A stretch of 64,000 nt of DNA from Eukaryota sp. TZLM1-RC (lineage: Eukaryota > Protista > Metamonada: BaSk clade), in the NCBI GenBank assembly GCA_040285825.1, contig JAUPSS010000015.1, positions 31,392-95,391 of the forward strand, in the 5' to 3' direction. The number at the start of each line of letters is the position of its first letter. Position 1 is the first letter of the stretch. Both the position numbers and the translations under genes were made by a program. This document shows positions 8,807 through 37,130 of the stretch, piece by piece. The notes beneath the pieces are model-generated. The model had not been told where the DNA came from. It ran no database searches and was given only the letters and a program-made list of their open reading frames with translations.

Positions 8807-11657
8807 TTTTTTTTTTTTAAATTTAATTTTATTCTAAACCTATAAATCAACATCTAAAAAATCCATCTCTCCCAAAACAAAAACACTAGATGCAACTCTC
8901 TCATAGTGAGATCCAAGAGAAAGCAAAGCATCAGAAACCATCTTCAACATCCCCTTAAAAATAGAAAACACAATTCTATTTTGCCAAAACAATCTGTTGA
9001 AATTTCTGCCAGTTCTTCTCTTTACAATCATTTCAAAATCATCCAAAAAACGTAAAGCAGTTGGTGCAAGTGAACCAAAAAGGGAAAATACAAATGGATA
9101 CAAATTGTATTTTGCATGCTGTAGACTGGCCAATTTGGACAAAGGTTTATTGTATTTTTTTGAATTTAAAATTTTTCAGCATTTGAAAGGGGATTATGAA
9201 TTTCAGAATTAACAAAGCCTTTCATTTGAGGCATTACAAGGATCAACAGACATTACATCCAATAAAAATGAAGCTTCCATCTAATCCAGGTAATATAACA
9301 TCACCTCTATTATTCTTATGAAAATCATTTTCAGCATCAAACAGATTTGACAACAAAGGTTCCAAGAAGGATTCAATTCTATGAGATTTACACATACAAT
9401 ATAACTGGTCTCTTACAGCATCATGAACCTTGCTTCTAAAAAGTAATAAAATGTTTACAATTTAACAAATGAGTAGTTGTAATTTCTCGAGAACATTTAC
9501 AAATTAAATTATGAGGTAAAATTATCAGGCCAGATAAAGGAACGAAATCTCATATTCAGAGTCCAAGCAGAATCGGATAAGAGAGTACCATAAACTTGTG
9601 GAATTGTTGTTACTAAGGCAGAAGAAGTACTGTCACACATATCTTGTAAAAGATTTGCAAAAGCAGGGATTCTTTTTTTCTTGGCCAAGCCAAGTCTAAC
9701 ATCAAAATCCAAGCTTTCAAAAATCTTTGACAATTTTTGTTGAAGCTTTTTACAGCAAAACTGTAAATTAAATAGAGATCGGTTTTGGAATTTCTTGAAT
9801 TGATTGAGGAAAACATTTGGTCCAAATTTGTGGCGGTAATTTTTTTCAAGTTCACAAGATAACTCATACAAATAGGGACTACAATTGGGGACTAACAGAT
9901 GAGAATCATCAGGAAATCTACGAGAAAATTCATAAATGAAATTTTTGCCACCACCCAAGAATGCTGATTGACACAAAAATTGAAGATTTAGTAAAACCAA
10001 TACCACCCAAATTTGCTGAAGAAAATAAATGGCTTTTCAACATTCCTGGTTCTACATCCAATAAATCAGCAAAAAAATTCTGTTCTCAATGAATTAAAAG
10101 AACGACAAAAAAATCTAATGCTATGGAAGGAGCACAAGATCTCAAAATGTGGGTTATTCTCCCAGTGTAGCAAATTTTAAGCATGAAAAAAATTTAATAT
10201 GCTTTTTCTATATCTAAAGAAGAAATTGAATCAAGTTCAATTTTCATTTTTCCAAAATAACTTGCAATTCATTCTGAATTTGAGGCACATTTCCTAACCA
10301 ACAACCAAAGGAACTTAAAAGCATCACTACTATAATTAGTAAAAGGGACAATAGAATCGTTTATCACGAGGTCTTGAGCAGAAGAGCCAATCAGAAGGCA
10401 TTTGCTGGCATTAAGATGAAGCCCAATATTTTCATATGAATCGGCAATTTCTTGAGCAACCAATTCTAGTAAATCAAATGAACCAATCAAGGATATATCA
10501 TCCATATAAGCAACTATTTTTTTATAGAAGGGTATTTTTTTGCTTAATGATATTTAAAGTTTTGTGAATAGCTAAACAAAACAATAATGGGCCTAAAGGA
10601 TCTCCCTGCTTCACTCCAGAAGATGAATTAAGACCAAATGAATTAAAAAAATTAAATCTGATTCTTTCCCGTAAAAAAATGGTAGAAAAAAACTCGATAG
10701 CTCAGGAAAAATCAGATTTAATAACTTCAAAAATTGCTTCTCGCTTTACAGAATTAAAAAGCATTTTTTTAAAGTCGAGATTAAAAATAAAATTATTTTT
10801 CCTCTGCATTAAAAAAAGGTATCAGAGGCAATAGCAGCAACAGAAGCACCATCAATTGTTTTGATTCCAAATTGATGAGGATTCAAAAATGTAGAAGCTT
10901 TGTCTTTGACACGATCGAAGACAATTGATGCTAGCAAACGAGAAAGAGATTCACCAACAGCAATTGGGCGTATTCCATCAGGTTTGATTCCGTTTCCAGG
11001 CTTTACTAAAGCAATCAGACGTGCTGCGAGTAATTCAAATGGAGGATTAATTTTCAAAACAATCAATTGTTGAAAATAGTGGGCTAGATCATCAGCAATT
11101 TCGGGAGCACTGGAACACGCTATTATTAACAGATCAAAAGAAATTCCAGATGGGCCTGCTGCTTTCCCCTTTGGCAATTTTTGAATAGTTTTAAGAACTT
11201 CAATTGCAGTAATAGGATTTTCAATCCAAAAAGGACACACTTCAGGCTTGCTGCACTTGAAATTTTCTTGAGGATGCAACTTTTGAAGTTTTTCAAGGGT
11301 ATCAGAGTTTGCATCAGCCAAAGAAGAGGAAAACAAAGACTGCATTGCGGCACCATAACGACCACGTAAGCACAATTTACGGCAAATTTTTGATTTTACA
11401 ATTTTTCTATTTCCAAATTTTTTCTTAAAACAATTTTTGTTTTTTCGAGCAAAATATTTCCAGAAGGATGAAATATTCCACTTATTATTCAGAAGTAAAA
11501 TTTCTCATTACCATTGAGAAGGGGATTGTGCTGGCGGGACTTATTTCTACTGGGATCCGGATCGGGGGTCTTACGGTATCAACGGCTTTACAATTCGTAC
11601 AAAACAGAAGTTTTCGACCATTTCTTGAATCTGCAACATCTTTTTTGCAAAATCTTT
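8807..11657 (-). mobile_element. Family A near-full-length copy inserted into a B monomer
   Basis: Poly-T at 8807; RT motifs GPSG, RPIAVGE, QFG, AYMDD; 15-bp TSD TCATGCAACGTAGAA (8792-8806 / 11658-11672). Confidence 0.9.
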
Positions 11658-12191
11658 TCATGCAACGTAGAACGATAGGAAATAAATCTATTACAATTCA
11701 ATAAATGTGATAATGTCAAACCAGCTCCACATTTGCAAAACAAATCATTGGGCAAATTACAAGGCCATAAATAACAACGCATTCTCATAGCAGTGGTCCA
11801 TTGGTCGTCATTCAAAAATAGGCCAAAAATCTGGGGAATTTGATTTATCAAAACTGCAGATGAACTGTCCTTCAAATCAATCAAAAAATTTGCAAAAGCA
11901 GGATTTTCTTTCTTAGCCGTGCTAAGTCGAACAATAAAATCCTTGCTTTCAAATTTTCTCAAAAGATGTCGTTGGAGCTTTTTCAACGCAAATTTTAATG
12001 AATACAAACTTCTGTCTGGAATTTCTTGAATGGATATGGGGAAACATGATTGCCATAAGTCGGGAGATAAACTGGATATTTCTTCTCTTATGTTATCGAG
12101 GAATAAGCTATTTGTAGTTTCAAGGAGATTTTCGGCAAAAGGATATCTTCTAGAGAATTCAAATACAAAATTTTTTCCACCACCAATAAAT

Positions 12192-14646
12192 CATAGAATT
12201 GAATCCTTCTTGGAACCTCTGTTGTCAAATCTGTTTGATGCTGAAAATGATTTTCATAAGAATAATAGAGGTGATGTCATATTACCTGGATTAGATGGAA
12301 GCTTCATTTTATTGGATGTAATGTCTGTTGATCCTTGTAATGCCTCAAATGAAAGGCTTGTTAATTCTGAAATTCATAATCCCCTTTCAAATGCTGAAAA
12401 TTTTAAATTCAAAAAATACAATGAACCTTTGTCCAAATTGGCCAGTCTACAGCATGCAAAATACAATTTGTACCCATTTGTATTTTCCCTTTTTGGTTCA
12501 CTTGCACCAACTGCTTTACGTTTTTTGGATGATTTTGAAATGATTGTAAAGAGAAGAACTGGCAGAAATTTCAACAGATTGTTTTGGCAAAATAGAATTG
12601 TGTTTTCTATTTTTAAAGGGATGTTGAAGATGGTTTCTGATGCTTTGCTTTCTCTTGGATCTCACTATGAGAGAGTTGCATCTAGTGTTTTTGTTTTGGG
12701 AGAGATGGATTTTTTAGATGTTGATTTATAGGTTTAGAATAAAAAGGTTTCGCTTAAAAAAAATAAAAAAAAAACCACCAATAAATGCAGCTTTTTGAAA
12801 GATTTTTGAAAGCTTGGATTTTGATGTTAGACTTGGCTTGGCCAAGAAAAAGAATCCCGCTTTTGCAAATCTTTTACAAGATATGTGTGACAGTACTTCT
12901 TCTGCCTTAGTAACAACAATTCCACAAGTTTATGGTACTCTCTTATCCGATTCTGCTTGGACTCTGAATATGAGATTTCGTTCCTTTATCTGGCCTGATA
13001 ATTTACCTCATAATTTAATTTGTAAATGTTCTCGAGAAATTACAACTACTCATTTGTTAAATTGTAAACATTTTATTACTTTTAGAAGCAAGGTTCATGA
13101 TGCTGTAAGAGACCAGTTATATTGTATGTGTAAATCTCATAGAATTGAATCCTTCTTGGAACCTCTGTTGTCAAATCTGTTTGATGCTGAAAATGATTTT
13201 CATAAGAATAATAGAGGTGATGTCATATTACCTGGATTAGATGGAAGCTTCATTTTATTGGATGTAATGTCTGTTGATCCTTGTAATGCCTCAAATGAAA
13301 GGCTTGTTAATTCTGAAATTCATAATCCCCTTTCAAATGCTGAAAATTTTAAATTCAAAAAATACAATGAACCTTTGTCCAAATTGGCCAGTCTACAGCA
13401 TGCAAAATACAATTTGTACCCATTTGTATTTTCCCTTTTTGGTTCACTTGCACCAACTGCTTTACGTTTTTTGGATGATTTTGAAATGATTGTAAAGAGA
13501 AGAACTGGCAGAAATTTCAACAGATTGTTTTGGCAAAATAGAATTGTGTTTTCTATTTTTAAAGGGATGTTGAAGATGGTTTCTGATGCTTTGCTTTCTC
13601 TTGGATCTCACTATGAGAGAGTTGCATCTAGTGTTTTTGTTTTGGGAGAGATGGATTTTTTAGATGTTGATTTATAGGTTTAGAATAAAAAGGTTTCGCT
13701 TAAAAATAAAAACCACCAATAAATGCAGCTTTTTGAAAGATTTTTGAAAGCTTGGATTTTGATGTTAGACTTGGCTTGGCCAAGAAAAAGAATCCCGTTT
13801 TTGCAAATCTTTTACAAGATATGTGTGACAGTACTTCTTCTGCCTTAGTAACAACAATTCCACAAGTTTATGGTACTCTCTTATCCGATTCTGCTTGGAC
13901 TCTGAATATGAGATTTCGTTCCTTTATCTGGCCTGATAATTTACCTCATAATTTAATTTGTAAATGTTCTCGAGAAATTACAACTACTCATTTGTTAAAT
14001 TGTAAACATTTTATTACTTTTAGAAGCAAGGTTCATGATGCTGTAAGAGACCAGTTATATTGTATGTGTAAATCTCATAGAATTGAATCCTTCTTGGAAC
14101 CTCTGTTGTCAAATCTGTTTGATGCTGAAAATGATTTTCATAAGAATAATAGAGGTGATGTCATATTACCTGGATTAGATGGAAGCTTCATTTTATTGGA
14201 TGTAATGTCTGTTGATCCTTGTAATGCCTCAAATGAAAGGCTTGTTAATTCTGAAATTCATAATCCCCTTTCAAATGCTGAAAATTTTAAATTCAAAAAA
14301 TACAATGAACCTTTGTCCAAATTGGCCAGTCTACAGCATGCAAAATACAATTTGTACCCATTTGTATTTTCCCTTTTTGGTTCACTTGCACCAACTGCTT
14401 TACGTTTTTTGGATGATTTTGAAATGATTGTAAAGAGAAGAACTGGCAGAAATTTCAACAGATTGTTTTGGCAAAATAGAATTGTGTTTTCTATTTTTAA
14501 AGGGATGTTGAAGATGGTTTCTGATGCTTTGCTTTCTCTTGGATCTCACTATGAGAGAGTTGCATCTAGTGTTTTTGTTTTGGGAGAGATGGATTTTTTA
14601 GATGTTGATTTATAGGTTTAGAATAAAAAGGTTTCGCTTAAAAAAA
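12192..14646 (+). mobile_element. Three head-to-tail 5'-truncated family A copies (12192-12774, 12795-13712, 13733-14646)
   Basis: Open C-terminal ORFs 12814-13677 and 13752-14615; shared variant tail AAAAAGGTTTCGCTT-An; separated by duplicated pieces of the B target CCACCAATAAATGCAGCTTT. Confidence 0.9.
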
Positions 14647-14666
14647 ATAAATGCAGCTTTGGTCAA

Positions 14667-17600
14667 GCTTTTAAAAAATAATTTATATGTATGCCATGTT
14701 TGCTCCTCGCTTGATACATTACGGCCTCCATGTAAGATTCCGAATGTTCTCAGTCCCAAGGCTTCCATTCCCTTTTCTGTTGCGTTTAGAACATTCAGTC
14801 TTGCTTTGAAAAAAGGAGAATGGGATATATTTTCTATTTGGAAATTCTTCCTTGAACAAAAATCAGGTTCTCGTCCCCAAAAGGCTTTCACTCCAAAGAA
14901 ACAACCCAAGAATAAGACTGTACGAAAATTTTTGCTACGTGGGAGATATGGTTCAGGGAAAAACGCTCTGTTCTCATCTGATCTTGCTCCTGTGACTGAT
15001 GAAACTGTAAATCAATTAGTGGATCTGCATCCAGCTGAATTTCTTCATTTGGATAAACCATCTGCTTCACAATTTTGGAAACAAAATCCACTTTCTGAAA
15101 AAGAAGTTGAAACTGCCATTTTCCGTCTTCCATCTGGAAAAGCTCCAGGTCCATCTGGAATTACTTTTGATATGCTGAAATCTGTGTGCCGCCAAAATGC
15201 CTTTATTATTAAAGATTTATGTTCCTTTTTTCAAGATGTTTTGACAATGAAAATTGTTCCACCAAAAGAATTAAGTGCATCACGGTTAGTGGCTTTAACT
15301 AAACCTAATGGAAAAGTTCGCCCAATTGCCATTGGTGAAGCCATTTATCGCCTGATGTCTTCAGTAATTTTTAATCGAGTTTCAACAAAAGCTAAAGAAT
15401 ACTTTTCTCCATTCCAATATGGAATCAAAACCATAGATGGAGCTTCAGTTGCAGCTTTGACATCTGATCTGTTTTTCAATTGTCACGAAAATAGTTGCAT
15501 TTTTAATCTTGATTTCAAAAATGCTTTCAATTCAGTGAACTTGTTCAGTAAATTGTAGACAATTTAACAAAATACGTACCCAATTTTTGGCTTATTTAAT
15601 GTCTGTTGATCCATCAATTTTGAAAAATCATATTTTTTCTGATGTTCAACTTGGCGGTGTTGGATTCAATTCATCAAAATATTTGACCAAAGCTGCATTT
15701 ATTGGTGGTGGAAAAAATTTTTGTATTTGAATTCTCCAGAAGATATCCTTTTGCCGAAAATCTTCTTGAAACTACAAATAGCCTATTCCTCGATAACTTA
15801 AGAGAAGAAATTTCCAGTTTATCTCCAGACTTATGGCAATCATGTTTCCCCATATCTATTCAAGACATTCCAGACAGAAGTTTGTATTCTCTAAAATTTG
15901 CGTTGAAAAAGCTCCAACGACATCTTTTTGAAAAAAATTTGAAAAGCAAGGATTTTTATTGTTCGACTTAGCACGGCTAAGAAAGAAAATCCTGTTTTGC
16001 AAATTTTTGATTGATTGAAGGACAGTTCATCTGCAGTTTTGATAAATCAAATTCCCCAGATTTATGGTCTATTTTTTTGAATGACGACCAATGGACCACT
16101 GCTATGAGAATGCGTTGTTATTTATGGCCTTGTAATTTGCCCAATGATTTGTTTTTGCAAATGTGGAGCTGGTTTGACATTATCACATTTATTTAATTGT
16201 AATAGATTTATTTCCTATCGTTCTACGTTGCATGATGCAGTCAGAGATCAAATCCATGCAATGTGTAATTCCTATCATATTGAATCTTTTGTAGAACCTT
16301 TGTTGAGGTCTCTTGATATAAATGAAAGCGTAAGAGATTCAGAATATAGGAAAACGACGTGCTGATGTTGTTGTGCCCTCGTTTGATGATGTCATGAATG
16401 TTGTTGATGTCGTAACAGTGGATGTTTTGCAAGAAAAAAATGCCTTGAAAAATGCTCAATCCGAAGTATCCCCCTTGATGACTCCGAATTGTACAAACGG
16501 AAAAAAAGTATGCAAATCCTTTAAAAAGAATTGAAACATGTTCGCCATGTAGATTACCAAATTTGCCCATTTGCTATATCGTTGTATGGTCGTCTTGGAA
16601 AAAAACTGCTATGAATTTTATTGATGATTTTTGAGAAATCTTGTAGAAAGAAGAATGAATAAGCGTTTTTGATCGTCGCTTGTGGCTAAATCGTATTGTT
16701 TTTACTATTTTCAAATCAATTCCTAAAATGATTTCAAAGCTTTGATGTCTGTCAGTGCACATTACGAAGAAATTGCTGTTGTGAGGTTTGATGGTGTGGA
16801 AGCTTGTTTTGAAGATATTGACTTTTTAGACTGTAGTTTAATAATAAATTAAAAATTTTTCAAAAATTCAGTGAAAAAGAGATTCAATTTGGAAAGAAAT
16901 CAAATCAAATTTTTCCTGAACTCGAAACCTTTTTTATAGGTTTTTATGGTAATTCATCTGATTTAATTTTTAATTCTTTTTAATCTGGATTCTTTATCAG
17001 GAGTTAAACAAAGGAGACCCTTTAGGTCCTTTCTTTTTGTCGTGCAATTCACCCAATTTTGGAAAAAATTAAAGAAGAAAATTCTGACCTTCAAGTGGTA
17101 GCTTACATGGATGACATTTTCTTGTATTGGTCCAGAAAGTACAATTAATAGGGTTGCTAATGAAGCTGCTACATTATACCAATCCATAGGTCTTGATTTG
17201 AATGTTCAAAAAAATGTTTTTTTGTATTTCTAGGAAAAAAATGTTAAGTTAATAATTAATTCCCTCGAAGTTCCATATATTGATTATACTTCAACTAGTT
17301 TCTGCTTTCTGGGTTGGTATTTAGGTTCCGCCGAAAAAGACACTTGACAGCCTTGAAAATTATTTAAATTCAATTAAAAAGAGCTAGAAGTCATAAAGAC
17401 TCTTGGATTGGAAGAAACATCTTAAATTTTTTTCTTTTTGAAAATTTGTTATGCTGGAAAAAAATTACTCATTTACTGCGATCATTACCTCCATCCCTAA
17501 CTTACAATTTTTTTGTAGACAATTTAACAAAAATACGTACCCAATTTTTTTGGCTTATTTAATGTCTGTTGATCCATCAATTTTGAAAAAAATCATATTT

Positions 17601-24600: not shown

Positions 24601-25706
24601 AGATAAACTGGATATTTCTTCTCTTAAGTTATGGAGGAATAAGCTATTTGTAGTTTCAAGAAGATTTTCGGCAAAAGAATATCTTCTAGAGAATTCAAAT
24701 ACAAAATATTTTCCACCACCAATAAATGCAGCTTTGGTCAAATATTTTGATGAATTGAATCCAACACCGCCAAGTTGAACATCAGAAAAAATATGATTTT
24801 TCAAAATTGATGGATCAACAGACATTAAATAAGCCAAAAATTGGGTACGTTTTTTGTAAAATTGTCTACAAAAATTGTAAGTTAGGGATGGAGGTAATGA
24901 TCGCAGTAAATGAGTAATTTTTCCAGCATAACAAATTTTCAAAAGAAAAAATTTAAGATGTTTTTCCAATTCAAGAGTCTTTATGACTTCTAGCTCTTTT
25001 TTAATTGAATTTAAATAATTTTCAAGGCTGTCAAGTGTCTTTTCGGCGGAACCTAAATACCAACCCAGAAAGCAGAAACTAGTTGAAGTATAATCAATAT
25101 ATGGAACTTCGAGGGAATTAATTATTAACTTAACATTTTTTCTAGAAATACAAAAACATTTTTGAACATTCAAATCAAGACCTATGGATTGGTATAATGT
25201 AGCCGCTTCATTAGCAACCCTATGAATTGTACTTTCTGGACCAATACAAGAAATGTCATCCATGTAAGCTACCACTTGAAGGTCAGAATTTTCTTCTTTT
25301 AATTTTTTCAAAATTGGGTGAATTGCAAGACAAAAAAAGAAAGGACCTAAAGGGTCTCCTTGTTTAACTCCTGATAAATAATCCAGATTAAAAGAATTAA
25401 AAATTAAATCAGATGAATTACCATAAAACCTATAAAAAAGGTTTCGAGTTCAGGAAAATTTGATTTGATTTCTTTCCAAATTGAATCTCTTTTCACTGAA
25501 TTGAAAGCATTTTTGAAATCAAGATTAAAAATGCAACTATTTTCGTGACAATTGAAAAACAGATCAGATGTCAAAGCTGCAACTGAAGCTCCATCTATGG
25601 TTTTGATTCCATATTGGAATGGAGAAAAGTATTCTTTAGCTTTTGTTGAAACTCGATTAAAAATTACTGAAGACATCAGGCGATAAATGGCTTCACCAAT
25701 GGCAAT
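21641..25706 (-). mobile_element. Two tandem family B copies (21641-23570 and 23571-25706)
   Basis: ORFs 21654-23132 and 23611-25311 share private variants (DHHLW, YSRLG, GKYF). The tail is followed by TTCAGTGAA, as at 16865. Confidence 0.88.
23611..25311 (-). CDS. Family B polyprotein, C-terminal 566 aa (RT AYMDD, thumb, Zn motif, restriction-like endonuclease)
   Basis: ORF-track translation contains all the listed motifs; N-terminus broken by a frameshift. Confidence 0.8.
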   Translation of the reverse strand: MKKLKEENSDLQVVAYMDDISCIGPESTIHRVANEAATLYQSIGLDLNVQKCFCISRKNVKLIINSLEVPYIDYTSTSFCFLGWYLGSAEKTLDSLENYLNSIKKELEVIKTLELEKHLKFFLLKICYAGKITHLLRSLPPSLTYNFCRQFYKKRTQFLAYLMSVDPSILKNHIFSDVQLGGVGFNSSKYLTKAAFIGGGKYFVFEFSRRYSFAENLLETTNSLFLHNLREEISSLSPDLWQSCFPISIQEIPDRSLYSLKFALKKLQRHLLRKFESKDFIVRLSTAKKENPAFANFLIDLKDSSSAVLINQIPQIFGLFLNDDQWTTAMRMRCYLWPCNLPNDLFCKCGAGLTLSHLFNCNRFISYRSTLHDAVRDQIHAMCNSYHIESFVEPLLRSLDINESVRDSEYGKRRADVVVPSFDDVMNVVDVVTVDVCKKNALKNAQSEVSPLDDSELYKRKKYANPLKELKHVRHVDYQICPFAISLYSRLGKTAMNFIDDFENLVKRRMNKRFDHHLWLNRIVFTIFKSIPKMISKALMSVSAHYEEIAVVRFDGVEACFEDIDF

Positions 25707-25729
25707 AAAATTTGCTAAATAAAATTTAT

Positions 25730-27174
25730 CCAAATTTGCTGAAGAAAATAAGTGACTTTTCAACATTCCTGGTTCTACATCCAATAAATCAGCAAAAAAT
25801 TCTGTTCTTAATGAATTGAATGAACGACAAAAATCTAATGCTGTGGAAGGAGCACAAGATCTCAAAATGTGGGTTATTCTCCCAGTGTAGCAAATTTTAA
25901 GCATGAAAAATTTAATATGCTTTTCTATATCTAAAGAAGAAATTGAATCAAGTTCAATTTTCATTTTTTCCAAAATAACTTGCAATTCATTCTGAATTTG
26001 AGGCACGTTTCCTAACCAACAACCAAGGAACTTAAAAGCATCACTACTATAATTAGTAAAAGGGACAATAGAATCGTTTATCACGAGATCTTGAGCAGAA
26101 GATCCAATCAGAAGGCATTTGCTGGCATTTTGGAATTTCTTTTGATCTCTTAAAAATAGCGTGTTCCAGTGTTCCCGAAATTGCTGATGATCTAGCCCAT
26201 TATTTTCAACAATTAATTGTTTTGAAAATTAATCCTCCATTTGAATTACTCGCAGCACGTCTGATTGCTTTAGTAAAGCCTGGAAACGGAATCAAACCTG
26301 ATGGAATACGCCCAATTGCTGTTGGTGAATCTCTTTCTCGTTTGCTGGCATCAATTGTCTTCGATCGTGTCAAAGACAAAGCTTCTACATTTTTGAATCC
26401 TCATCAATTTGGAATCAAAACAATTGATGGTGCTTCTGTTGCTGCTATTGCCTCTGATACCTTTTTTAATGCAGAGGAAAATAATTTTATTTTTAATCTC
26501 GACTTTAAAAATGCTTTTAATTCTGTAAAGCGAGAAGCAATTTTTGAAATTATTAAATCTGATTTTCCTGAGCTATCGAGTTTTTTCTACCATCTTTATG
26601 GGAAAGAATCAGATTTAATTTTTAATTCATTTGGTCTTAAATCATCTTCTGGTGTGAAGCAAGGTGATCCTTTAGGTCCATTATTGTTTTGTTTAGCTAT
26701 TCACAAAACTTTAAATATCATTAAGCAAAAATACCCTTCTATAAAAATAGTTGCTTATATGGATGATTTATCCTTGATTGGTTCATTTGATTTACTAGAA
26801 TTAGTTGCTCAAGAAATTGCCGATTCATATGAAAAAATTGGCCTTTATCTTAATGCCAGCAAATGCCTTCTGATTGGCTCTTCTGCTCAAGACCTCGTGA
26901 TAAACGATTCTATTGTCCCTTTTACTAATTATAGTAGTGATGCTTTTAAGTTCCTTGGTTGTTGGTTAGGAAACGTGCCTCAAATTCAGAATGAATTGCA
27001 AGGTATTTTGGAAAAAATGAAAATTGAACTTGATTCAATTTCTTCCTTAGATATAGAAAAGCATATTAAATTTTTCATGCTTAAAATTTGCTACACTGGG
27101 AGAATAACCCACATTTTGAGATCTTGTGCTCCTTCCACAGCATTAGATTTTTGTCGTTCATTTAATTCATTGAG
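25730..27174. mobile_element. Family A internal fragments in inverted arrangement (minus 25730-26129, plus 26131-27174)
   Basis: ORF 26222-27202 is the RT core; inversion junction GCTGGCATT|TTGGAATTTC. Confidence 0.85.
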
Positions 27175-27341
27175 TGTTGTTGTTGAACTCAAATTGAATT
27201 AGTAGGTTTCTTTGTATTTCGACTGATGACGTGATACTCATTTATGAATCAGTTTTATTAATAAACTACAGATTTTTTCTCTCTCCTTCGTGTGTTCATC
27301 TGCCTAACGGCATCAATAATTATTGGCCCTTCTTATTTCAG

Positions 27342-28096
27342 ATGACTGTTCCTTCTGTCAACCTCCGTCTCTTTCTTCCATGAAAGTTGAAAGTGTTCTC
27401 TTGTTCCTACAAGAGTGGAAGATCTATTCTTCTGTGACTTCTAAGAAAGAGCTTGTTCCAGCAAGACTCTTGGTCGATTCTTTTCTGTTAGAGTCCCTAT
27501 CTCTCCAGAAATCCGACGTCTCTTCCAGTGACGATGTTCTTCTTAGACATCTTCAATCTGTCGTATCGTTCGCCACGTACGAAGATTTTAGTCTGGCTAT
27601 GTCAAAACTGAAGCTTGATGTCCGTATTGGTGACGTCCGAGAACGTATGTCCTGTTACCTGCGACGTTTTCTCCAGGTAAAGAGTAGGGCTTCCGGACTG
27701 AAGTTACCAGACACAGCTTTTCTGAATCGATTTGCCAGAGGAATTCTTCCCGTAGGTCTTCAACGTTCTCTACTAGCGAGCATTCGAGATGATGTATTCC
27801 CAGATCTTCACTCTCTTGTCGAAACCACTACTGATGAGCTGTTGGACTGCTCTAGGGTTGCTTCATGGACTCGTGGTTTCAAAACCTCAGTGAATGATGT
27901 GGAACGTACGGCTGGCACTAAAACGAGGTCCTCTTGGCGCTCTCAGGATTTAAAAAATCAATCGTGCTTCAAGTGCCACAAGCCTGGACACATCTCCCGC
28001 GATTGTCCATCTAAAATCAAACATGAGGTAAATTATTTGTGTCACACAAACGATGCACCAAAGAGTTTAACAAACCCCATATCTTCCCTCTATTGA
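27342..28096 (+). CDS. gag: Gag-like protein with CCHC zinc knuckle (1-bp frameshift near the start)
   Basis: CFKCHKPGHISRDC; near-identical to the intact copies apart from one missing C in a C-run. Confidence 0.75.
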
Positions 28097-28251
28097 GCCA
28101 GTACTGTATTTGTCCTCAGAAAAGTGGGAAAAAGTAGTGTTGTTGTTGAACTCAAATTGAATTAGTAGGTTTCTTTGTATTTCGACTGATGACGTGATAC
28201 TCATTTATGAATCAGTTTTATTAATAAACAACAGATTTCTCTCTCTCCTTC

Positions 28252-28303
28252 GTGTGTTCATCTGCCTAACGGCATCAATAATTATTGGCCCTTCTTATTT
28301 CAG
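28252..28303 (+). other. 52-nt spliceosomal-type intron spanning the LTR 3' end and primer-binding region
   Basis: GTGTGT...CCTAAC...CCCTTCTTATTTCAG|ATG; exactly this segment is absent at 29215/29216. Confidence 0.8.
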
Positions 28304-28990
28304 ATGACTGTTCCTTCTGTCAACCTCCCGTCTCTTTCTTCCATGAAAGTTGAAAGTGTTCTCTTGTTCCTACAAGAGTGGAAGATCTATTCTTCTGTGA
28401 CTTCTAAGAAAGAGCTTGTTCCAGCAAGACTCTTGGTCGATTCTTTTCTGTTAGAGTTCCTATCTCTCCAGAAATCCGACGTCTCTTCCAGTGACGATGT
28501 TCTTCTTAGACATCTTCAATCTGTCGTATCGTTCGCCACGTACGAAGATTTTAGTCTGGCTATGTCAGAACTGAAGCTTGATGTCCGTATTGGTGACGTC
28601 CGAGAACGTATGTCCTGTTACCTGCGACGTTTCCTCCAGGTAAAGAGTAGGGCTTCCGGACTGAAGTTACCAGACACAGCTTTTCTGAATCGATTTGCCA
28701 GAGGAATTCTTCCCGTAGGTCTTCAACGTTCTCTACTAGCGAGCATTCGAAATGATGTATTCCCAGATCTTCACTCTCTTGTCGAAACCACTACTGATGA
28801 GCTGTTGGACTGCTCTAGGGTTGCTTCATGGACTCGTGGTTTCAAAACCTCAGTGAATGATGTGGAACGTACGGCTGGCACTAAAACGAGGTCCTCTTGG
28901 CGCTCTCAGGATTTAAAAAATCAATCGTGCTTCAAGTGCCACAAGCCTGGACACATCTCCCGCGATTGTCCATCTAAAAATCAAACATGA
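28304..28990 (+). CDS. gag: Gag-like protein (A-run frameshift after the knuckle)
   Basis: CCHC knuckle; the ATG directly follows the intron-acceptor AG. Confidence 0.8.
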   Translation: MTVPSVNLPSLSSMKVESVLLFLQEWKIYSSVTSKKELVPARLLVDSFLLEFLSLQKSDVSSSDDVLLRHLQSVVSFATYEDFSLAMSELKLDVRIGDVRERMSCYLRRFLQVKSRASGLKLPDTAFLNRFARGILPVGLQRSLLASIRNDVFPDLHSLVETTTDELLDCSRVASWTRGFKTSVNDVERTAGTKTRSSWRSQDLKNQSCFKCHKPGHISRDCPSKNQT

Positions 28991-29215
28991 GGTAAATTAT
29001 TTGTGTCACACAAACGATGCACCAAAGAGTTTAACAAACCCCATATCTTCCCTCTATTGAGCCAGTACTGTATTTGTCCTCAGAAAAGTGGGAAAAAGTA
29101 GTGTTGTTGTTGAACTCAAATTGAATTAGTAGGTTTCTTTGTATTTCGACTGATGACGTGATACTCATTTATGAATCAGTTTTATTAATAAACAACAGAT
29201 TTCTCTCTCTCCTTC

Positions 29216-29971
29216 ATGACTGTTCCTTCTGTCAACCTCCCGTCTCTTTCTTCCATGAAAGTTGAAAGTGTTCTCTTGTTCCTACAAGAGTGGAAGATCT
29301 ATTCTTCTGTGACTTCTAAAAAAGAGCTTGTTCCAGCAAGACTCTTGGTCGATTCTTTTCTGTTAGAGTCCCTATCTCTCCAGAAATCCGACGTCTCTTC
29401 CAGTGACGATGTTCTTCTTAGACATCTTCAATCTGTCGTATCGTTCGCCACGTACGAAGATTTTAGTCTGGCTATGTCAGAACTGAAGCTTGATGTCCGT
29501 ATTGGTGACGTCCGAGAACGTATGTCCTGTTACCTGCGACGTTTCCTCCAGGTAAAGAGTAGGGCTTCCGGACTGAAGTTACCAGACACAGCTTTTCTGA
29601 ATCGATTTGCCAGAGGAATTCTTCCCGTAGGTCTTCAACGTTCTCTACTAGCGAGCATTCGAGATGATGTATTCCCAGATCTTCACTCTCTTGTCGAAAC
29701 CACTACTGATGAGCTGTTGGACTGCTCTAGGGTTGCTTCATGGACTCGTGTTTTCAAAACCTCAGTGAATGATGTGGAACGTACGGCTGGCACTAAAACG
29801 AGGTTTTCTTGGCGCTCTCAGGATTTAAAAAATCAATCGTGCTTCAAGTGCCACAAGCCTGGACACATCTCCCGCGATTGTCCATCTAAAATCAAACATG
29901 AGGTAAATTATTTGTGTCACACAAACGATGCACCAAAGAGTTTAACAAACCCCATATCTTCCCTCTATTGA
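29216..29971 (+). CDS. gag: Gag-like protein, 251 aa, intact (spliced unit)
   Basis: CX2CX4HX4C knuckle; no protease, RT or integrase follows. Confidence 0.85.
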   Translation: MTVPSVNLPSLSSMKVESVLLFLQEWKIYSSVTSKKELVPARLLVDSFLLESLSLQKSDVSSSDDVLLRHLQSVVSFATYEDFSLAMSELKLDVRIGDVRERMSCYLRRFLQVKSRASGLKLPDTAFLNRFARGILPVGLQRSLLASIRDDVFPDLHSLVETTTDELLDCSRVASWTRVFKTSVNDVERTAGTKTRFSWRSQDLKNQSCFKCHKPGHISRDCPSKIKHEVNYLCHTNDAPKSLTNPISSLY

Positions 29972-30152
29972 GCCAGTACTGTATTTGTCCTCAGAAAAGT
30001 GGGAAAAAGTAGTGTTGTTGTTGAACTCAAATTGAATTAGTAGGTTTCTTTGTATTTCGACTGATGACGTGATACTCATTTATGAATCAGTTTTATTAAT
30101 AAACAACAGATTTCTCTCTCTCCTTCGTGTGTTCATCTGCCTAACGGCATCA

Positions 30153-30585
30153 CCAGTTTTTGACAATAGTAGAGAAATCATCTAGAAATAATAAAGCGGT
30201 TTTACCCAAGGTTCCAAATAAAGAAAAAGCAAAAGGACAAAGAAGGTATTGAGTATGTGAGTTGGAATTCAGATTATTGATTTTTTCTGTGTACTTGATA
30301 ATTTTCGCTTCTTCAGCTCTACGTAAAGGTGAATTATAAGATTGTGCCAGTTTTTCATTTGAGCTGTTTGATACATCAGTAGATCTGATATCAATATGAT
30401 CATTGATCCATCAAGTCGGGGAACTAGCACATCACCACGGCTGTCACCAGAAGAATTTTTGTCAGATTCATCAGCCAGATTTGAAAGCAAAGGTTCTAAA
30501 AAAGATTCAATCCGGTAGGACTTAAACATACAATAGAGCTGATCACGAACTGCATCATGCACTTTTGATCTAAAAGTAATAAATT
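30153..30585 (-). mobile_element. Family F fragment (divergent A-like endonuclease region)
   Basis: HDAVRDQLYCMFKSYRIESFLEP..SRGDVLVP; nucleotide sequence distinct from A. Confidence 0.75.
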
Positions 30586-32748
30586 TTGTTTATTAATTTT
30601 CATTTTATTCAAAACCTACAAATCAACATCTAAAAAATCCATCTCTCCCAAAACAAAAACACTAGATGCAACTCTCTCATAGTGAGATCCAAGAGAAAGC
30701 AAAGGATCTGAAACCATCTTCAACATCCCCTTAAAAATAGAAAACACAATTCTATTTTGCCAAAACAATCTGTTGAAATTTCTGCTAGTTCTTCTCTGTA
30801 CAATCATTTCACAATCATCCAAAAAACGTAAAGCAGTTGGTGCAAGTGAACCAAAATGGGAAAATACAAATGGATACAAATTGTATTTTGCATGCTGTAG
30901 ACTGGCCAATTTGGACAAAGGTTCATTGTATTTTTTGAATTTGAAATTTTCAGCATTTGAAAGAGGATTATGAATTTCAGAATTAACAAGCCTTTCATTT
31001 GAGGCATTACAAGGATCAACAGACATTACATCCAATAAAATGAAGCTTCCATCTAATCCAGGTAATATGACATCACCTCTATTATTCTTATGAAAATCAT
31101 CTTCAGCATTAAACAGATTTGACAACAGAGGTTCCAAGAAGGATTCAATTCTATGAGATTTACACATACAATATAACTGGTCTCTTACAGCATCATGAAC
31201 CTTGCTTCTAAAAGTAATAAAATGTTTACAATTTAACAAATGAGTAGTTGTCATTTCTCGAGAACATTTACAAATTAAATTATGAGGTAAATTATCAGGC
31301 CAGATAAAGGAACGAAATCTCATATTCAGAGTCCAAGCAGAATCGGATAAGAGAGTACCATAAACTTGCGGAATTGTTGTTACTAAGGCAGAAGAAGTAC
31401 TGTCACACATATCTTGTAAAAGATTTGCAAAAGCGGGATTCTTTTTCTTGGCCAAGCCAAGTCTAACATCAAAATCCAAGCTTTCAAAAATCTTTGACAA
31501 TTTTTGTTGAAGCTTTTTACAGCAAAACTGTAAATTAAATAGAGATCGATTTGGAATTTCTTGAATTGATTTTTTTTAATTTAATTTTAATTTATTTTCA
31601 AAACCACAGTCTAAAAGTCAATATCTTCAACACAAGCTTCCACACCATCAAACCTTACAGCAGCAATGTTTTCATAATGTGCACTGACAGACATTAAAGC
31701 TTTCGAAATCATTTTAGGAATTGATTTGAAAATAGTAAAAACAATACGATTTAGCCACAAGCGACGATCAAAACGCTTATTCATTCTTTTTTTCACAAGA
31801 TTTTCAAAATCATCAATAAAATTCAAAGCAGTTTTTCCAAGACGACCATACAACGATATAGCAAATGGGCAAATTTGGTAATCTACATGGCGAACATGTT
31901 TCAATTCTTTCAAAGGATTTGCATACTTTTTCCGTTTGTGCAATTCGGAGTCATCAAGGGGGGATACTTCGGATTGAGCATTTTTCAAGGCATTTTTCTT
32001 GCAAACATCCACTGTTACGACATCAACAACATTCATGACATCATCAAACGAGGGCACAACAACATCAGCACGTCGTTTTCCATATTCTGAATCTCTTACG
32101 CTTTCATTTATATCAAGAGACCTCAACAAAGGTTCTACAAAAGATTCAATATGATAGGAATTACACATTGCATGGATTTGATCTCTGACTGCATCATGCA
32201 ACGTAGAACGATAGGAAATATATCTATTACAATTAAATAAATGTGATAATGTCAAACCAGCTCCACATTTACAAAACAAATCATTGGGCAAATTACAAGG
32301 CCATAAATAACAACGCATTCTCATAGCAGTGGTCCATTGGTCGTCATTCAAAAATAGACCATAAATCTGGGGAATTTGATTTATCAAAACTGCAGATGAA
32401 CTGTCCTTCAAATCAATCAAAAAATTGGCAAAAGCAGGATTTTCTTTCTTAGCCGTGCTAAGTCGAACAATAAAATCCTTGTTTTCAAAATTTTTCAAAA
32501 GATGTCGTTGGAGCTTTTTCAACGCAAATTTTAATGAATATAAACTTCTGTCTGGAATTTCTTGAATGGATATGGGGAAACATGATTGCCATAAGTCGGG
32601 AGATAAACTGGATATTTCTTCTCTTAAGTTATCCAGGAATATGCTATTTGTATTTACTTGAATTGATTGAGGAAAACATTTGGTCCAAATTTGTGGCGGC
32701 AATTTTTCAAGTTCACAAGATAACTCATACAAATAGGGACTACAATTG
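30586..32748 (-). mobile_element. Family A 5'-truncated copy with a nested B2 copy (31572-32656); 5' end abuts the virus-like island
   Basis: ORF 30616-31500; B2 TSD CTTGAATTGATT (31560-31571 / 32657-32668). Confidence 0.85.
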
Positions 32749-33136
32749 TAATGTTGCGAGTTTTACAAAAATCTATATATTCCTTTCGCTCAACACTTAA
32801 ATCACCAATTACATATCCATTACATAGATCCAATATCTTACAACACAGAATTATTTTTACTGGTTTAATTTTTGCCAATTCAAAATATTTTATTGGACAA
32901 CCCAATACTTTTTCCCAAGCAGAACCACTTGAAGTCCAATTCATTGATTTGATTTCTAAGAAATAATTTGGAGTTTCAATATCAGGACATGGATAATTTT
33001 GATATTTCTTTTTAAATTCATTAATAGATGTTCTTTCAAAACTTAAATATTTTGCAATTACATGTTCACAATAATTTCCATTTTTGTAACTATTGCATTA
33101 TAAATCATAATCGACATTTTCATAAAGCCAATTCAT
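32749..33136 (-). pseudogene. PD-(D/E)xK restriction-endonuclease-like protein, giant-virus type; in-frame TAA at 33098-33100; 3' end cut by element A
   Basis: Manual translation from ATG 33136: ..GNYCEHVI..PCPDIETPNYFLEIKSMNWTSSGSAWEKVLGCPIKY. Confidence 0.6.
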
Positions 33137-33151
33137 TTTAAAATTAAATAA

Positions 33152-33475
33152 TCATTTTTTTAATTTTAAACCAATTACGTTTTCCAAAACCATTCTTATA
33201 AATTCAAATTCATCACTATCAAAATCAAAGAATTTCCAATAATGATAAATTCGTTCAATTTGTTCTTGTGGACTTCCTTTAATTCTAATATATTTAAAAG
33301 TTGATATTTCTTCTGGATCATAATCACTTAATATATTTTTAATAATTTCATCATTTGGTTTTGCAACTATAACTTCGGATTCAGCAATCATAGATAAATC
33401 AACATCTTCTTCATATGCAAAAGTTCCAAGAATTTCTGCGAGAATCATATTTAAAAAGTTTTCTTCAAAACTCAT
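33152..33475 (-). CDS. Hypothetical protein, 107 aa (virus-like island)
   Basis: Clean ATG-to-stop ORF preceded by AAAAATG, with 15-25 bp intergenic gaps. Confidence 0.6.
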   Translation of the reverse strand: MSFEENFLNMILAEILGTFAYEEDVDLSMIAESEVIVAKPNDEIIKNILSDYDPEEISTFKYIRIKGSPQEQIERIYHYWKFFDFDSDEFEFIRMVLENVIGLKLKK

Positions 33476-33498
33476 TTTTGGTATATTTTTTAGTATAT

Positions 33499-34434
33499 TT
33501 ACAAATTTAATTGTTCAACTATATTTTTTATAATATGTGTTTTATTGGTTCTTTTTATTGTTTTTATATATAAAATCATATCATCAAATTCATTGTTGTT
33601 AAACATTTTCATTCGTTTTAATAAAAATTTACAATATACTTGATTTAATTCATTTTTTCTAAACACTTTCCAAAAACTATCTACATACCATCTGGATGTA
33701 AAATATTCCTATTAAATGTCATTCCAGCCACACCTTCCATTCCAATTTTTTCAGATGAAAATAAGGCAAAATCAGATCTATTTGTCTTTACTGATAAATC
33801 TTTATAATCCAAAACACCAAGTGCTTGAGCAACATCCATTACTTTGTAAACATTTTTTCCAAATTGTTTGAAAAATTCTTTTACATCAACAATTTCTCCA
33901 TCTCTAGATGAAATTAATGGAACAATAACCATTCTAATTCTGTGAAATATTTCTGAATCAATTTCATCTGTATAAACAAATTCAATATTTTTTGCAGCAA
34001 GAATTTTTTCAATTGATGGATGATTGCCAGGATGTAAAGCAACAACCATATTTGGAAATTTTTCTTTAAATGTACCCAATAATCCATTCATTAAACATGT
34101 CACACTGTTACCAAACACTGTTATAAATTCACTTTCTGGTGTTTCCTCATTATTTGCTTTATCAAACATTTGTTTATATTCTTTATCTGAAATGTTACTA
34201 CTATCTAAACCAGATGAATAATATTTTCGAGTTAATTTAAAATATGGATTTCTAAAACCCTGCACACCTTCTCCAATTAATTTCGAAATTGAAAGTCTAC
34301 ATTTTTCTAAAAAAATCTTTTGATGTTCTTCCTCTTATATGTAATTCATTTGATGGATTTCCAAAAATACAATTACGAAATAAATATTTTGCAGTATTGA
34401 TTGAACAATAACCCTCACATGCAGTGAAATTCAT
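33499..34434 (-). pseudogene. NifS/IscS-like class V PLP aminotransferase, divergent, two frameshifts
   Basis: FGNPSNELHIRG..LEKCRLSISKLIG (upstream frame), then NHPS, MDVAQALG and DFALFSSEK (PLP lysine motif). Confidence 0.7.
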
Positions 34435-34487
34435 TTTTTCTTTTAAATATGTTCTTTTTATTAAATGATTTTAATCTTTATTTCAAA

Positions 34488-34676
34488 ATGGCATTATCAC
34501 TATCAGCACTTACATCTGGTGATTTATCAAAATTTGTGAAAAAAGATGAAGTTGAAGAATTGGATGATGAAGATGAACAATCATTTGATACATCAAATTT
34601 TATAGATTTAATTGGAGACAAAAAAGATGAATTTGAAAATGAAGATGATGAACAATCAGATAATGAATCAGTATAA
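34488..34676 (+). CDS. Small acidic hypothetical protein (62 aa)
   Basis: CAAAATGG start context, D/E-rich; divergent from the NifS-like gene across ~50 bp. Confidence 0.45.
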   Translation: MALSLSALTSGDLSKFVKKDEVEELDDEDEQSFDTSNFIDLIGDKKDEFENEDDEQSDNESV

Positions 34677-35399
34677 TAAATTATTTTAAGTTTTGTTTTC
34701 GACACATCTAAAATTTGGGTGATTAATGATAATAAATATGGCTCGTGTTTTATCATATTTTCCTCATCTTCAAATTTACGTTTTAAAAATTCGATACAAT
34801 TGTATTTTTCATTAAAATCAATTATATTTTTTGTACTAAATGATTCTTTATCTTTTATTTTTAGTAGTAATTTTTCTAGAATAAGATCTCGTAACATTTT
34901 CAAAAAATAAAATCATTTTTCAGAATTTAATAAAAATATCGAAATCTACATTTTCAAAAGCTTTAATACATTTTTGATAGAGTTCAATTCCATTTTCACT
35001 TACTTTTCCATTTAAAAAAGTTTCCTTAATGTACTCTAGTGGTAATTTTTTTTGATTAATAAAACTAATATTTTTATTAATTTCAGAATCAAACAAAATG
35101 TTCAATGCATCTAAAGTATTTGTGTAAACGTGTACACACAAATATTGTCATAATTAATAAATCCACGAACAAATTCATCTCCAACATTAAACTCAATTTC
35201 ATCATCTTCAACATTTAAACTATATTTTGCAATTCTATGTTCATCATTAAACAAAGCATCATCACTAGCATTAAATGATGCTTCAACGATCGAAGACGAT
35301 CGTTCGATCCAATACCCCCCAAATTTGCTGAAGAAAATAAGTGACTTTTCAACATTCCTGGTTCTACATCCAATAAATCAACAAAAAATTCTGTTCTCA

Positions 35400-36508
35400 T
35401 GATGCCGTTAGGCAGATGAACACACGAAGGAGAGAGAGAAAAAATCTGTAGTTTATTAATAAAACTGATTCATAAATGAGTATCACGTCATCAGTCGAAA
35501 TACAAAGAAACCTACTAATTCAATTTGAGTTCAACAACAACACTACTTTTTCCCACTTTTCTGAGGACAAATACAGTACTGGCTCAATAGAGGGAAGATA
35601 TGGGGTTTGTTAAACTCTTTGGTGCATCGTTTGTGTGACACAGATAATTTACCTCATGTTTGATTTTAGATGGACAATCGCGGGAGATGTGTCCAGGCTT
35701 GTGGCACTTGAAGCACGATTGATTTTTTAAATCCTGAGAGCGCCAAGAGGACCTCGTTTTAGTGCCAGCCGTACGTTCCACATCATTCACTGAGGTTTTG
35801 AAACCACGAGTCCATGAAGCAACCCTAGAGCAGTCCAACAGCTCATCAGTAGTGGTTTCGACAAGAGAGTGAAGATCTGGGAATACATCATCTCGAATTC
35901 TCGCTAGTAGAGAACGTTGGAGACCTACGGGAAGAATTCCTCTGGCAAATCGATTCAGAAAAGCTGTGTCTGGTAACTTCAGTCCGGAAGCCCTACTCTT
36001 TACCTGGAGGAAACGTCGCAGGTAACAGGACATACGTTCTCGGACGTCACCAATACGGACATCAAGCTTCAGTTCTGACATAGCCAGACTAAAATCTTCG
36101 TACGTGGCGAACGATACGACAGATTGAAGATGTCTAAGAAGAACATCGTCACTGGAAGAGACGTCGGATTTCTGGAGAGATAGGGACTCTAACAGAAAAG
36201 AATCGACCAAGAGTCTTGCTGGAACAAGCTCTTTCTTAGAAGTCACAGAAGAATAGATCTTCCACTGTTGTAGGAACAAGAGAACACTTTCAACTTTCAT
36301 GGAAGAAAGAGACGGGAGGTTGACAGAAGGAACAGTCATCTGAAATAAGAAGGGCCAATAATTATTGATGCCGTTAGGCAGATGAACACACGAAGGAGAG
36401 AGAGAAAAAATCTGTAGTTTATTAATAAAACTGATTCATAAATGAGTATCACGTCATCAGTCGAAATACAAAGAAACCTACTAATTCAATTTGAGTTCAA
36501 CAACAACA
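35400..36508 (-). mobile_element. Complete 1109-bp Gag-only LTR element inserted in family A
   Basis: 143-bp LTRs at 35400-35542 and 36366-36508; TG..CA ends; PPT; 4-bp TSD TGAG (CTCA at 35396-35399 and 36509-36512). Confidence 0.92.
35584..36339 (-). CDS. gag: Gag-like protein, 251 aa, intact
   Basis: CCHC knuckle; the only substantial ORF between the LTRs. Confidence 0.88.
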   Translation of the reverse strand: MTVPSVNLPSLSSMKVESVLLFLQQWKIYSSVTSKKELVPARLLVDSFLLESLSLQKSDVSSSDDVLLRHLQSVVSFATYEDFSLAMSELKLDVRIGDVRERMSCYLRRFLQVKSRASGLKLPDTAFLNRFARGILPVGLQRSLLARIRDDVFPDLHSLVETTTDELLDCSRVASWTRGFKTSVNDVERTAGTKTRSSWRSQDLKNQSCFKCHKPGHISRDCPSKIKHEVNYLCHTNDAPKSLTNPISSLY

Positions 36509-37130
36509 CTCAATGAATTAAATGAACGACAAAAATCTAATGCTGTGGAAGGAGCACAAGATCTCAAAATGTGGGTTATTCTCCCAGTGTAGCAAATTTT
36601 AAGCATGAAAAATTTAATATGCTTTTCTATATCTAAGGAAGAAATTGAATCAAGTTCAATTTTCATTTTTTCCAAAATACCTTGCAATTCATTCTGAATT
36701 TGAGGCACGTTTCCTAACCAACAACCAAGGAACTTAAAAGCATCACTACTATAATTAGTAAAAGGGACAATAGAATCGTTTATCACGAGGTCTTGAGCAG
36801 AAGAGCCAATCAGAAGGCATTTGCTGGCATTTTGGAATTTCTTTTGATCTCTTAAAAATAGCGTGTTCCAGTGTTCCCGAAATTGCTGATGATCTAGCCC
36901 ATTATTTTCAACAATTAATTGTTTTGAAAATTAATCCTCCATTTGAATTACTTGCAGCACGTCTGATTGCTTTAGTAAAGCCTGGAAACGGAATCAAACC
37001 TGATGGAATACGCCCAATTGCTGTTGGTGAATCTCTTTCTCGTTTGCTGGCATCAATTGTCTTCGATCGTGATTCGATCGTTGATTCAAATAAAATATCA
37101 CTTTCTTGTTCATAGATTATATATTCATTA

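Follow-up and report, generated by a model that had tools for sequence, protein, structure and literature searches.

The window analysed here is a 64,000-nucleotide (nt) stretch of contig JAUPSS010000015.1 of assembly GCA_040285825.1 (window position = record position - 31391), whose proteins carry the label Eukaryota sp. TZLM1-RC, the type strain of Skoliomonas litria, an anaerobic soda-lake metamonad (PMC11603281). Between positions 27175 and 30152 of its plus strand lies a tandem array of a short retroelement, in which two units contain, and a third lacks, a 52-nt segment that is probably an intron of the host. The element is a non-autonomous long terminal repeat (LTR) retrotransposon of 963 bp that encodes Gag only, and is composed of a 140-nt LTR, a 26-nt leader, gag, a polypurine tract and an LTR. 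Each unit holds one open reading frame (ORF) of 251 amino acids (aa) with a CCHC zinc knuckle (zf-CCHC, Pfam PF00098, E = 6.7e-06), and no pol. The LTRs are direct repeats with TG...CA ends, and the LTR end (...GGCATCA) was set by the junctions between terminal LTR and flank in five loci. The census of copies covered a sample of 13 loci, and relatives of the element were found in three Skoliomonas strains.

Read from left to right, the array consists of LTR, leader, gag, LTR, leader, gag, truncated LTR, gag and LTR, with full units of 963-964 bp and a third unit of 911 bp. The LTR of unit 1 (27175-27315, 141 nt, TG...CA) adjoins a left flank formed by a non-LTR reverse transcriptase (RT) ORF ending in ...CATTGAG, and is followed by the unit 1 copy of the candidate intron (27290-27341, placed by alignment of the units) and by a gag broken by a 1-nt deletion after codon 8 (27342-28096). 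A purine run precedes each LTR; the one directly upstream of the second LTR (GAAAAGTGGGAAAAAGTAG, 28119-28137) was read from the sequence as a putative polypurine tract. Unit 2 comprises a 140-nt LTR (28138-28277), with AATAAA at LTR positions 86-91, the candidate 52-nt spliceosomal intron (28252-28303, GTGTGT...CTTATTTCAG), which encloses a palindrome spanning the LTR end and leader (TCAATAATTATTGG, 28274-28287), and a gag (28304-28990) that keeps the CCHC knuckle and is shortened to 228 aa by a 1-nt insertion near its end. In unit 3, an LTR truncated to LTR positions 1-114 (29102-29215) is fused directly to the ATG of an intact gag (29216-29971, 251 aa, zf-CCHC). The full terminal LTR (30013-30152) closes the array, and the right flank begins with CCAGTTTTTGAC at 30153.

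Aligning the three units and the terminal LTR, we observed that unit 3 is short of exactly 52 nt, which correspond to 27290-27341 in unit 1 and 28252-28303 in unit 2, leaving the junction CCTTC|ATGACT at 29215|29216. The segment starts with GTGTGT, contains CTAAC and ends in TTTCAG abutting the gag ATG, and it is made up of the last 26 nt of the LTR and the entire 26-nt leader. The initial annotation of this DNA had described the missing piece in these same terms, and the alignment bore out every detail. The gap cannot be slid: its position is unambiguous and free of microhomology because each boundary separates two different bases (C/G at the left one, G/A at the right one). The 52 nt are free of upstream ATG, and Gag would therefore be translatable from the spliced or the unspliced form. 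Judged by position only, the putative donor at LTR position 115 of 140 precedes, and the acceptor lies past, the palindromic priming region.

To place these boundaries among the introns of the host, we examined genes called in the sampled loci, and a GT...AG piece was accepted as an intron when its exact length restored the annotated protein length with an open frame. Eleven host introns were obtained in this way, and four were checked exon by exon against Pfam; the Pfam coordinates run on across them, from 180 to 182 in a kinase, from 169 to 205 in Aa_trans, and from 93 to 122 in CLN3 with a 26-codon exon in between. All 11 measure 26-35 nt. They start with GTATG (8/11) or GTT (3/11), and ten of them carry an A exactly at position -7 from the 3' end in a YTNAY context. 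The sole exception is a kinase-gene intron (locus L009, 3398-3428, GTATGTTCTACATGCTCTTCTCACCCTACAG), which has a C at -7 and its nearest A's at -4 and -9.

We next scored the 52-nt segment on a profile of the 11 host introns that covers six 5' and ten 3' positions. It reached 14.3 bits, within the range of the host introns when each was left out in turn (10.1-18.7 bits), and was the top 52-mer of its unit, the runner-up reaching 8.4 bits. Among the 63,948 52-mers of the window's plus strand, 14.3 bits were attained by the segment's own two copies alone. A chance match to intron signals is unlikely. At its 3' end, CTTATTTCAG carries an A at -7 in a YTNAY context, and the donor GTGTGT agrees with GTATG(T) at five of six positions, its G at position 3 having no counterpart in the 11 host introns. 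The earlier expectation that the segment displays the intron signals of the host stands as to its overall fit, whereas the relevant signal is a GTATG-type start together with the A at -7, and not CTAAC with a pyrimidine tract. We had also considered CTAAC as the branch point and dropped it: it lies 34 nt from the 3' end, while the host branch A lies at -7, and it is probably not used. A hairpin that would shorten the effective intron is not supported either, as RNA folding of the segment was no better than that of shuffled sequences. A search of Rfam gave no match. Of note, a 32-nt piece within gag (28608-28639, GTATGT...CTCCAG) scores 15.8 bits, above the leader segment; it has no A at -7, its removal shifts the frame, and it is probably unused.

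The same signals recur in two diverged families of the element. Family B, represented by a 21-unit array (locus L006), shares ~72% nucleotide identity with the family of the window (family A), and a family in strain GEM-RC1 (locus L007; GEM) shares 64% identity in Gag. The counterpart segment is 45 nt long in family B (GTATTT...CTCATTGCAG|ATG) and 49 nt long in GEM-RC1 (GTATCA...CTCACTGCAG|ATG), and despite these indels GT, AG|ATG and the A at -7 are retained in both. From family A to family B, the spacing of palindrome and -7 A shifts by 3 nt, as would follow from a constraint counted from the 3' splice site. In the older family A copies, the 52 nt form the most conserved part of the element, with differences at 1 of 156 sites, compared with 30 of 346 in the rest of the LTR and 86 of 1303 in gag. 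If real, the intron would be a feature of the clade that holds families A, B and GEM.

Within the segment, the core ACGGCATCA|ATAATTATTGG forms a palindrome over the LTR end. This core recurs in a Gypsy-type element (locus L004), with which the Gag-only element shares an identical 20-nt LTR-end/leader core; a tblastn comparison of Gag with the ORFs of this Gypsy-type element detected no similarity. The palindrome reads CAATAATTATTG in families A, B and GEM-RC1 (L007) and in the Gypsy-type element (minus strand of L004, near 18586), and a distant Gag-only family of GEM-RC1 (locus L012, near 3975-3996) has a perfect 22-nt palindrome, GGCAACAATAATTATTGTTGCC, at its LTR end. Since the core recurs in the Gypsy-type element and L012 has a palindrome at the same place, the core would be a priming, dimerisation or integration signal, and the palindrome is probably a priming or dimerisation site. 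Priming may proceed without the 3' end of a transfer RNA (tRNA), because TGG is absent behind the LTR end of L012 (ATAATTATTGTTGCCT followed by ATG) and the bases after TGG differ between family A (TGGCCC) and the Gypsy-type element (TGGTCA). No tRNA genes were present in the window or the sampled loci. When metagenomes were scanned for the conserved 20-nt core, the six matches were chance hits in unrelated coding DNA.

Two further observations concern the LTR. AATAAA (window 28223-28228) is kept in all families, including the equivalent sites in L006, L007 and L012, and in families A, B and GEM the putative donor follows it at a distance of 21-28 nt. The poly(A) site, i.e., the border between the R and U5 regions of the LTR, may thus be near the donor, and by analogy with some retroviruses, a donor placed directly behind the poly(A) signal could have the function of suppressing polyadenylation at the 5' end. 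In addition, one short-read contig, with a loose end at window 28261, joins an LTR end of family B type (...CTTTACTTCTTTGGTATT) to a family A leader and gag; it represents either a recombinant family or a contig made chimeric through the shared 31-nt core.

The intron-less form, which the initial annotation held to be fixed in the genome, is not confined to unit 3. Locus L010, on contig JAUPSS010000006.1, comprises an eight-unit array (8976-16410) with a period of 910-913 bp, in which the same 52 nt are missing from all eight units, the first included, and the terminal LTR is full. Five of these eight units, as well as unit 3, have an intact 251-aa ORF. The intron-less junction is known from the NCBI assembly only, in nine units on two contigs. 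These nine have A at LTR position 93 and G at position 59, while variants private to intron-containing copies are 93T or a longer T run (unit 1 and the minus-strand copy) and 59C (copies in locus L003).

The flanks of the two arrays tie them together, along with a single intron-containing copy that lies on the minus strand of the window (35400-36508) in the same non-LTR RT site, bounded by a 4-bp target-site duplication (TSD), TGAG. We read this copy as the unrecombined form of an insertion, S1; its empty site is present in a short-read contig in which position 27174 runs straight into AACAGAATTTTTTGCTG. The left flank of the window tandem (26852-27174) matches the flank of the minus-strand copy (36509-36831) at 100% over 323 nt, other copies of the repeat reaching at most 98.1%. 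Conversely, the right flank of L010 (16411-19074) matches window 35399-32744, the right flank of the minus-strand copy, at 99.4% over 2.7 kb. The window tandem has no TSD of its own. CCAG ends the left flank of L010 and begins the right flank of the window tandem, and when joined on one CCAG these two flanks encode consecutive C-terminal pieces of a non-LTR protein (...FLDDFSTIVK followed by KTGRIFDRTFWQNRIVFS...EEIDF-stop).

Because the flanks match crosswise and the CCAG flanks encode one protein, we propose two insertions, S1 with the TSD TGAG and S2 with the probable TSD CCAG. The window tandem (S1 on the left, S2 on the right) and L010 (S2 on the left, S1 on the right) are, as read from these flanks, reciprocal products of an exchange between S1 and S2. 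A direct search of the window and the loci found no empty CCAG site, which is deduced from the two flanks. The single-nucleotide polymorphisms (SNPs) are mosaic (position 379 is T in all window units and A in all L010 units; a C at position 607 is common to the window tandem and L010 units 1-6), a pattern that exchange and conversion would be expected to leave. Since unit 3 adjoins the S2 right flank and L010 begins at the S2 left flank, all nine intron-less units most simply derive from one loss in the S2 lineage. Independent losses in unit 3 and L010 were considered and set aside: the SNPs are mosaic, with 379T in common with the window units and 607C with L010 units 1-6, and the flanks favour one lineage. 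In family B, none of the 22 units sampled (21 in the L006 array and one in locus L013) lacks the stretch.

The surroundings of the tandem also seem to be rearranged. The 2.7-kb right flank of the minus-strand copy (32744-35399) is present again on JAUPSS010000006.1, which means either that it is duplicated in the genome or that the two contigs exchanged arms. At 25404-27202, two copies of the non-LTR RT region stand in inverted orientation adjoining the tandem, and the homology of the two Gag-only left flanks ends after 323 nt at an inversion breakpoint, which points to a complex local rearrangement.

Taken together, these observations lead us to favour, as a moderately probable account, an intron followed by one conversion of spliced RNA into DNA, amplification and the S1-S2 exchange. 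The exact gap, its match to host intron signals, the conservation of these signals and the relations of the flanks are observed; that the RNA is spliced, that the loss passed through RNA and in what sequence things happened we infer as follows. The RNA of the element would contain a 52-nt spliceosomal intron, with its donor in the LTR 26 nt before the LTR end and its acceptor abutting the gag ATG, and splicing would remove the LTR end and the palindromic priming region. Spliced RNA would then have been copied back into DNA once, by one of two routes: either complementary DNA (cDNA) of the spliced RNA recombined with a resident element, converting it in place, or the cDNA integrated, its first strand having been primed on co-packaged unspliced RNA and strand transfer having kept both outer LTR ends intact. 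The founder would have been a single copy, truncated LTR-gag-LTR, at the CCAG-flanked site, because the internal junctions of L010 are all truncated, its terminal LTR is full and its leftmost unit is intron-less. Through unequal exchange, in which the truncated 5' LTR recombined with the full 3' LTR, the founder would have grown into a tandem array devoid of the intron throughout, and exchange with the intron-containing copy at the TGAG site would have split this array, placing unit 3 in the window and eight units in L010. In a more specific version, which we regard as rather doubtful, the intron is functional and makes a dedicated, non-packageable gag mRNA, and the founder integrated directly as spliced-RNA cDNA primed on unspliced RNA. 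Direct integration would explain why the leftmost L010 unit, beside the 4-bp duplication, is intron-less.

Several points weigh against an intron and its reverse-transcribed loss. At 52 nt, the segment exceeds the 26-35 nt of all 11 host introns, although this is a small sample that does not set an upper limit, and position 3 of its donor is a G, absent from the 11 host introns, which have A or T there. The comparison with host splice signals that the initial annotation called for therefore came out divided, with GT, AG and the A at -7 in agreement and the length and the donor G at odds. Position 5 of the donor also deviates in family B (GTATTT) and in GEM (GTATCA). Signals for priming and integration would account for the conservation of the 52 nt just as well; the core ACGGCATCAATAATTATTGG also occurs in the Gypsy-type element without a matching GT...AG frame, and the distant Gag-only family in L012 has no AG before its ATG. 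The deduced empty CCAG site rejoins with a 1-nt frame offset, located in a T5 run beside the junction. Finally, one loss event only is supported, no direct cDNA signature was seen, and recurrence cannot be used as an argument.

The simplest competitor is a plain 52-bp DNA deletion, arising in replication or repair and perhaps favoured by the palindrome, that happened to mimic GT...AG and was then amplified by LTR-LTR exchange. It would draw on the 12-14-nt palindrome inside the segment, on the traceability of all nine intron-less units to one event, and on the length of 52 nt, outside the host range. Nonetheless, such a deletion would have had to begin and end without microhomology, stop exactly at the ATG and place both ends on a host-like donor and acceptor with an A at -7, when no unrelated 52-mer among the ~64,000 of the window's plus strand scores as well; moreover, the same signals are held in two diverged families, and we consider a deletion unlikely. 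An artefact of reverse transcription was also weighed, in which a template switch fused U3-R to the beginning of gag, so that U5 and the leader were left out with no splicing involved. LTR position 114 is 23 nt after the conserved AATAAA, perhaps at the poly(A) site (R/U5 border), AATAAA keeps its 21-28 nt distance to the putative donor across the three families, and the truncated LTR would then equal exactly U3-R. However, the junction contains neither poly(A) remnants nor homology, and such a switch explains neither the landing on the ATG nor the host-type acceptor motif, which makes it quite improbable.

Two other explanations bear on the history and the reality of the array. The initial annotation had proposed that the intron-less unit came from reverse transcription of an RNA reading through several units, or from conversion by cDNA. 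In the read-through case, the RNA would have been spliced at an LTR within the array and copied into cDNA whole, and spliced units would always sit behind an unspliced first unit. Read-through would agree with the commonness of tandem arrays of this element and with the order of units in the window (intron present, present, absent). Yet the window array has no TSD and joins the flanks of two different insertions, i.e., it is recombinant, and in L010 the unit beside the flank is intron-less, as are all eight units. As the model predicts an intron-containing first unit, a read-through origin is unsupported and hardly probable, while the other proposed origin, cDNA conversion, may still hold. Lastly, the 52-nt gap or the mixed array might stem from long-read error in assembly. 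The contig is small and repeat-rich, and the short-read contigs of four runs gave fragments and no joint, none of them spanning the intron-less junction or the array borders; these contigs drop minor variants by design, and their silence decides neither way. Given that the identical gap occurs in nine units on two contigs, each unit with its own SNPs, and that clean 52-nt gaps are not made by long-read errors, we regard an assembly artefact as highly improbable.

The proposed arrangement, an intron whose removal would separate a translated RNA from a replication template, has counterparts elsewhere. In foamy viruses, the major splice donor lies in the R region of the LTR, upstream of the priming site (PMC5035957). 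As in foamy viruses, the putative donor here is in the 5' LTR before the primer-binding site, and spliced RNA would lose the LTR end and the priming region while unspliced RNA would serve as the template. In contrast to foamy viruses, in which Gag is made from unspliced RNA, the acceptor abuts gag, the element encodes Gag only, the candidate intron is 52 nt long and the host is a metamonad with introns of 26-35 nt. The deltaretroviruses HTLV-1 and BLV have a splice donor inside the LTR likewise. Among Ty1/Copia elements, splicing yields a dedicated Gag mRNA in Arabidopsis EVD (PMC5580714) and in barley BARE (PMC3735527). Similarly, splicing of the present element would divide its RNA between one pool translated into Gag and another used for replication. 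The introns of EVD and BARE, however, lie in the pol region and remove coding sequence, whereas the candidate leader intron would remove cis signals only, from an element without pol.

The loss of the segment and the shape of the array also recall known processes. RT-mediated intron loss and processed copies are familiar from yeast and many eukaryotes, as are spliced proviral copies. The removal seen here resembles such losses in that it is precise, leaves the flanks untouched and occurred in a genome full of active reverse transcriptases; it differs from the usual case in that the intron would be the retroelement's own and take the LTR end and priming site with it, and in that a replication-dead gag was amplified as DNA. 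Ty1 multimers are tandem LTR-element arrays with shared LTRs, and the arrays described here are built in the same manner (LTR-gag-LTR-gag, neighbouring units sharing a single LTR and the last one closed by a full LTR), except that in one of them every unit is of the type with a 5' LTR cut short at the putative splice donor. Giardia and Trichomonas have short introns in which the branch point keeps a fixed place near the 3' end. The candidate intron shares with such metamonad introns an A at -7, set in a YTNAY context ahead of the AG; 10 of the 11 host introns have it too. It departs from the host introns in the distance from donor to branch A, ~45 nt versus ~20-28 nt, and in its donor, GTGTGT versus GTATGT. 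The combination of a Gag-only element, a putative leader intron that would remove its own priming region, and a fixed and amplified spliced copy in a small-intron metamonad is new. Transposable elements find no mention in the genome paper for this group.

If confirmed by RNA data, the intron would be the first to be described from a retroelement in the Barthelona-Skoliomonas branch of metamonads. For annotation, intron loss would explain why arrays of the element occur with a period of 911 bp versus 963 bp. The locus also offers a worked example of element-driven genome change, with a proposed loss of an intron, amplification in tandem and a swap of chromosome arms through exchange between two insertions. 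If the intron is real, the element would be a natural reporter of the way in which a spliceosome accustomed to introns of 26-35 nt deals with one of 52 nt that has a weak donor, and a Gag-only parasite would be using a retroviral trick, splicing away its own priming and packaging region. Should the founder indeed have integrated directly, the unprimable gag arrays could act as suppliers of Gag or as brakes on the copy number of the family.

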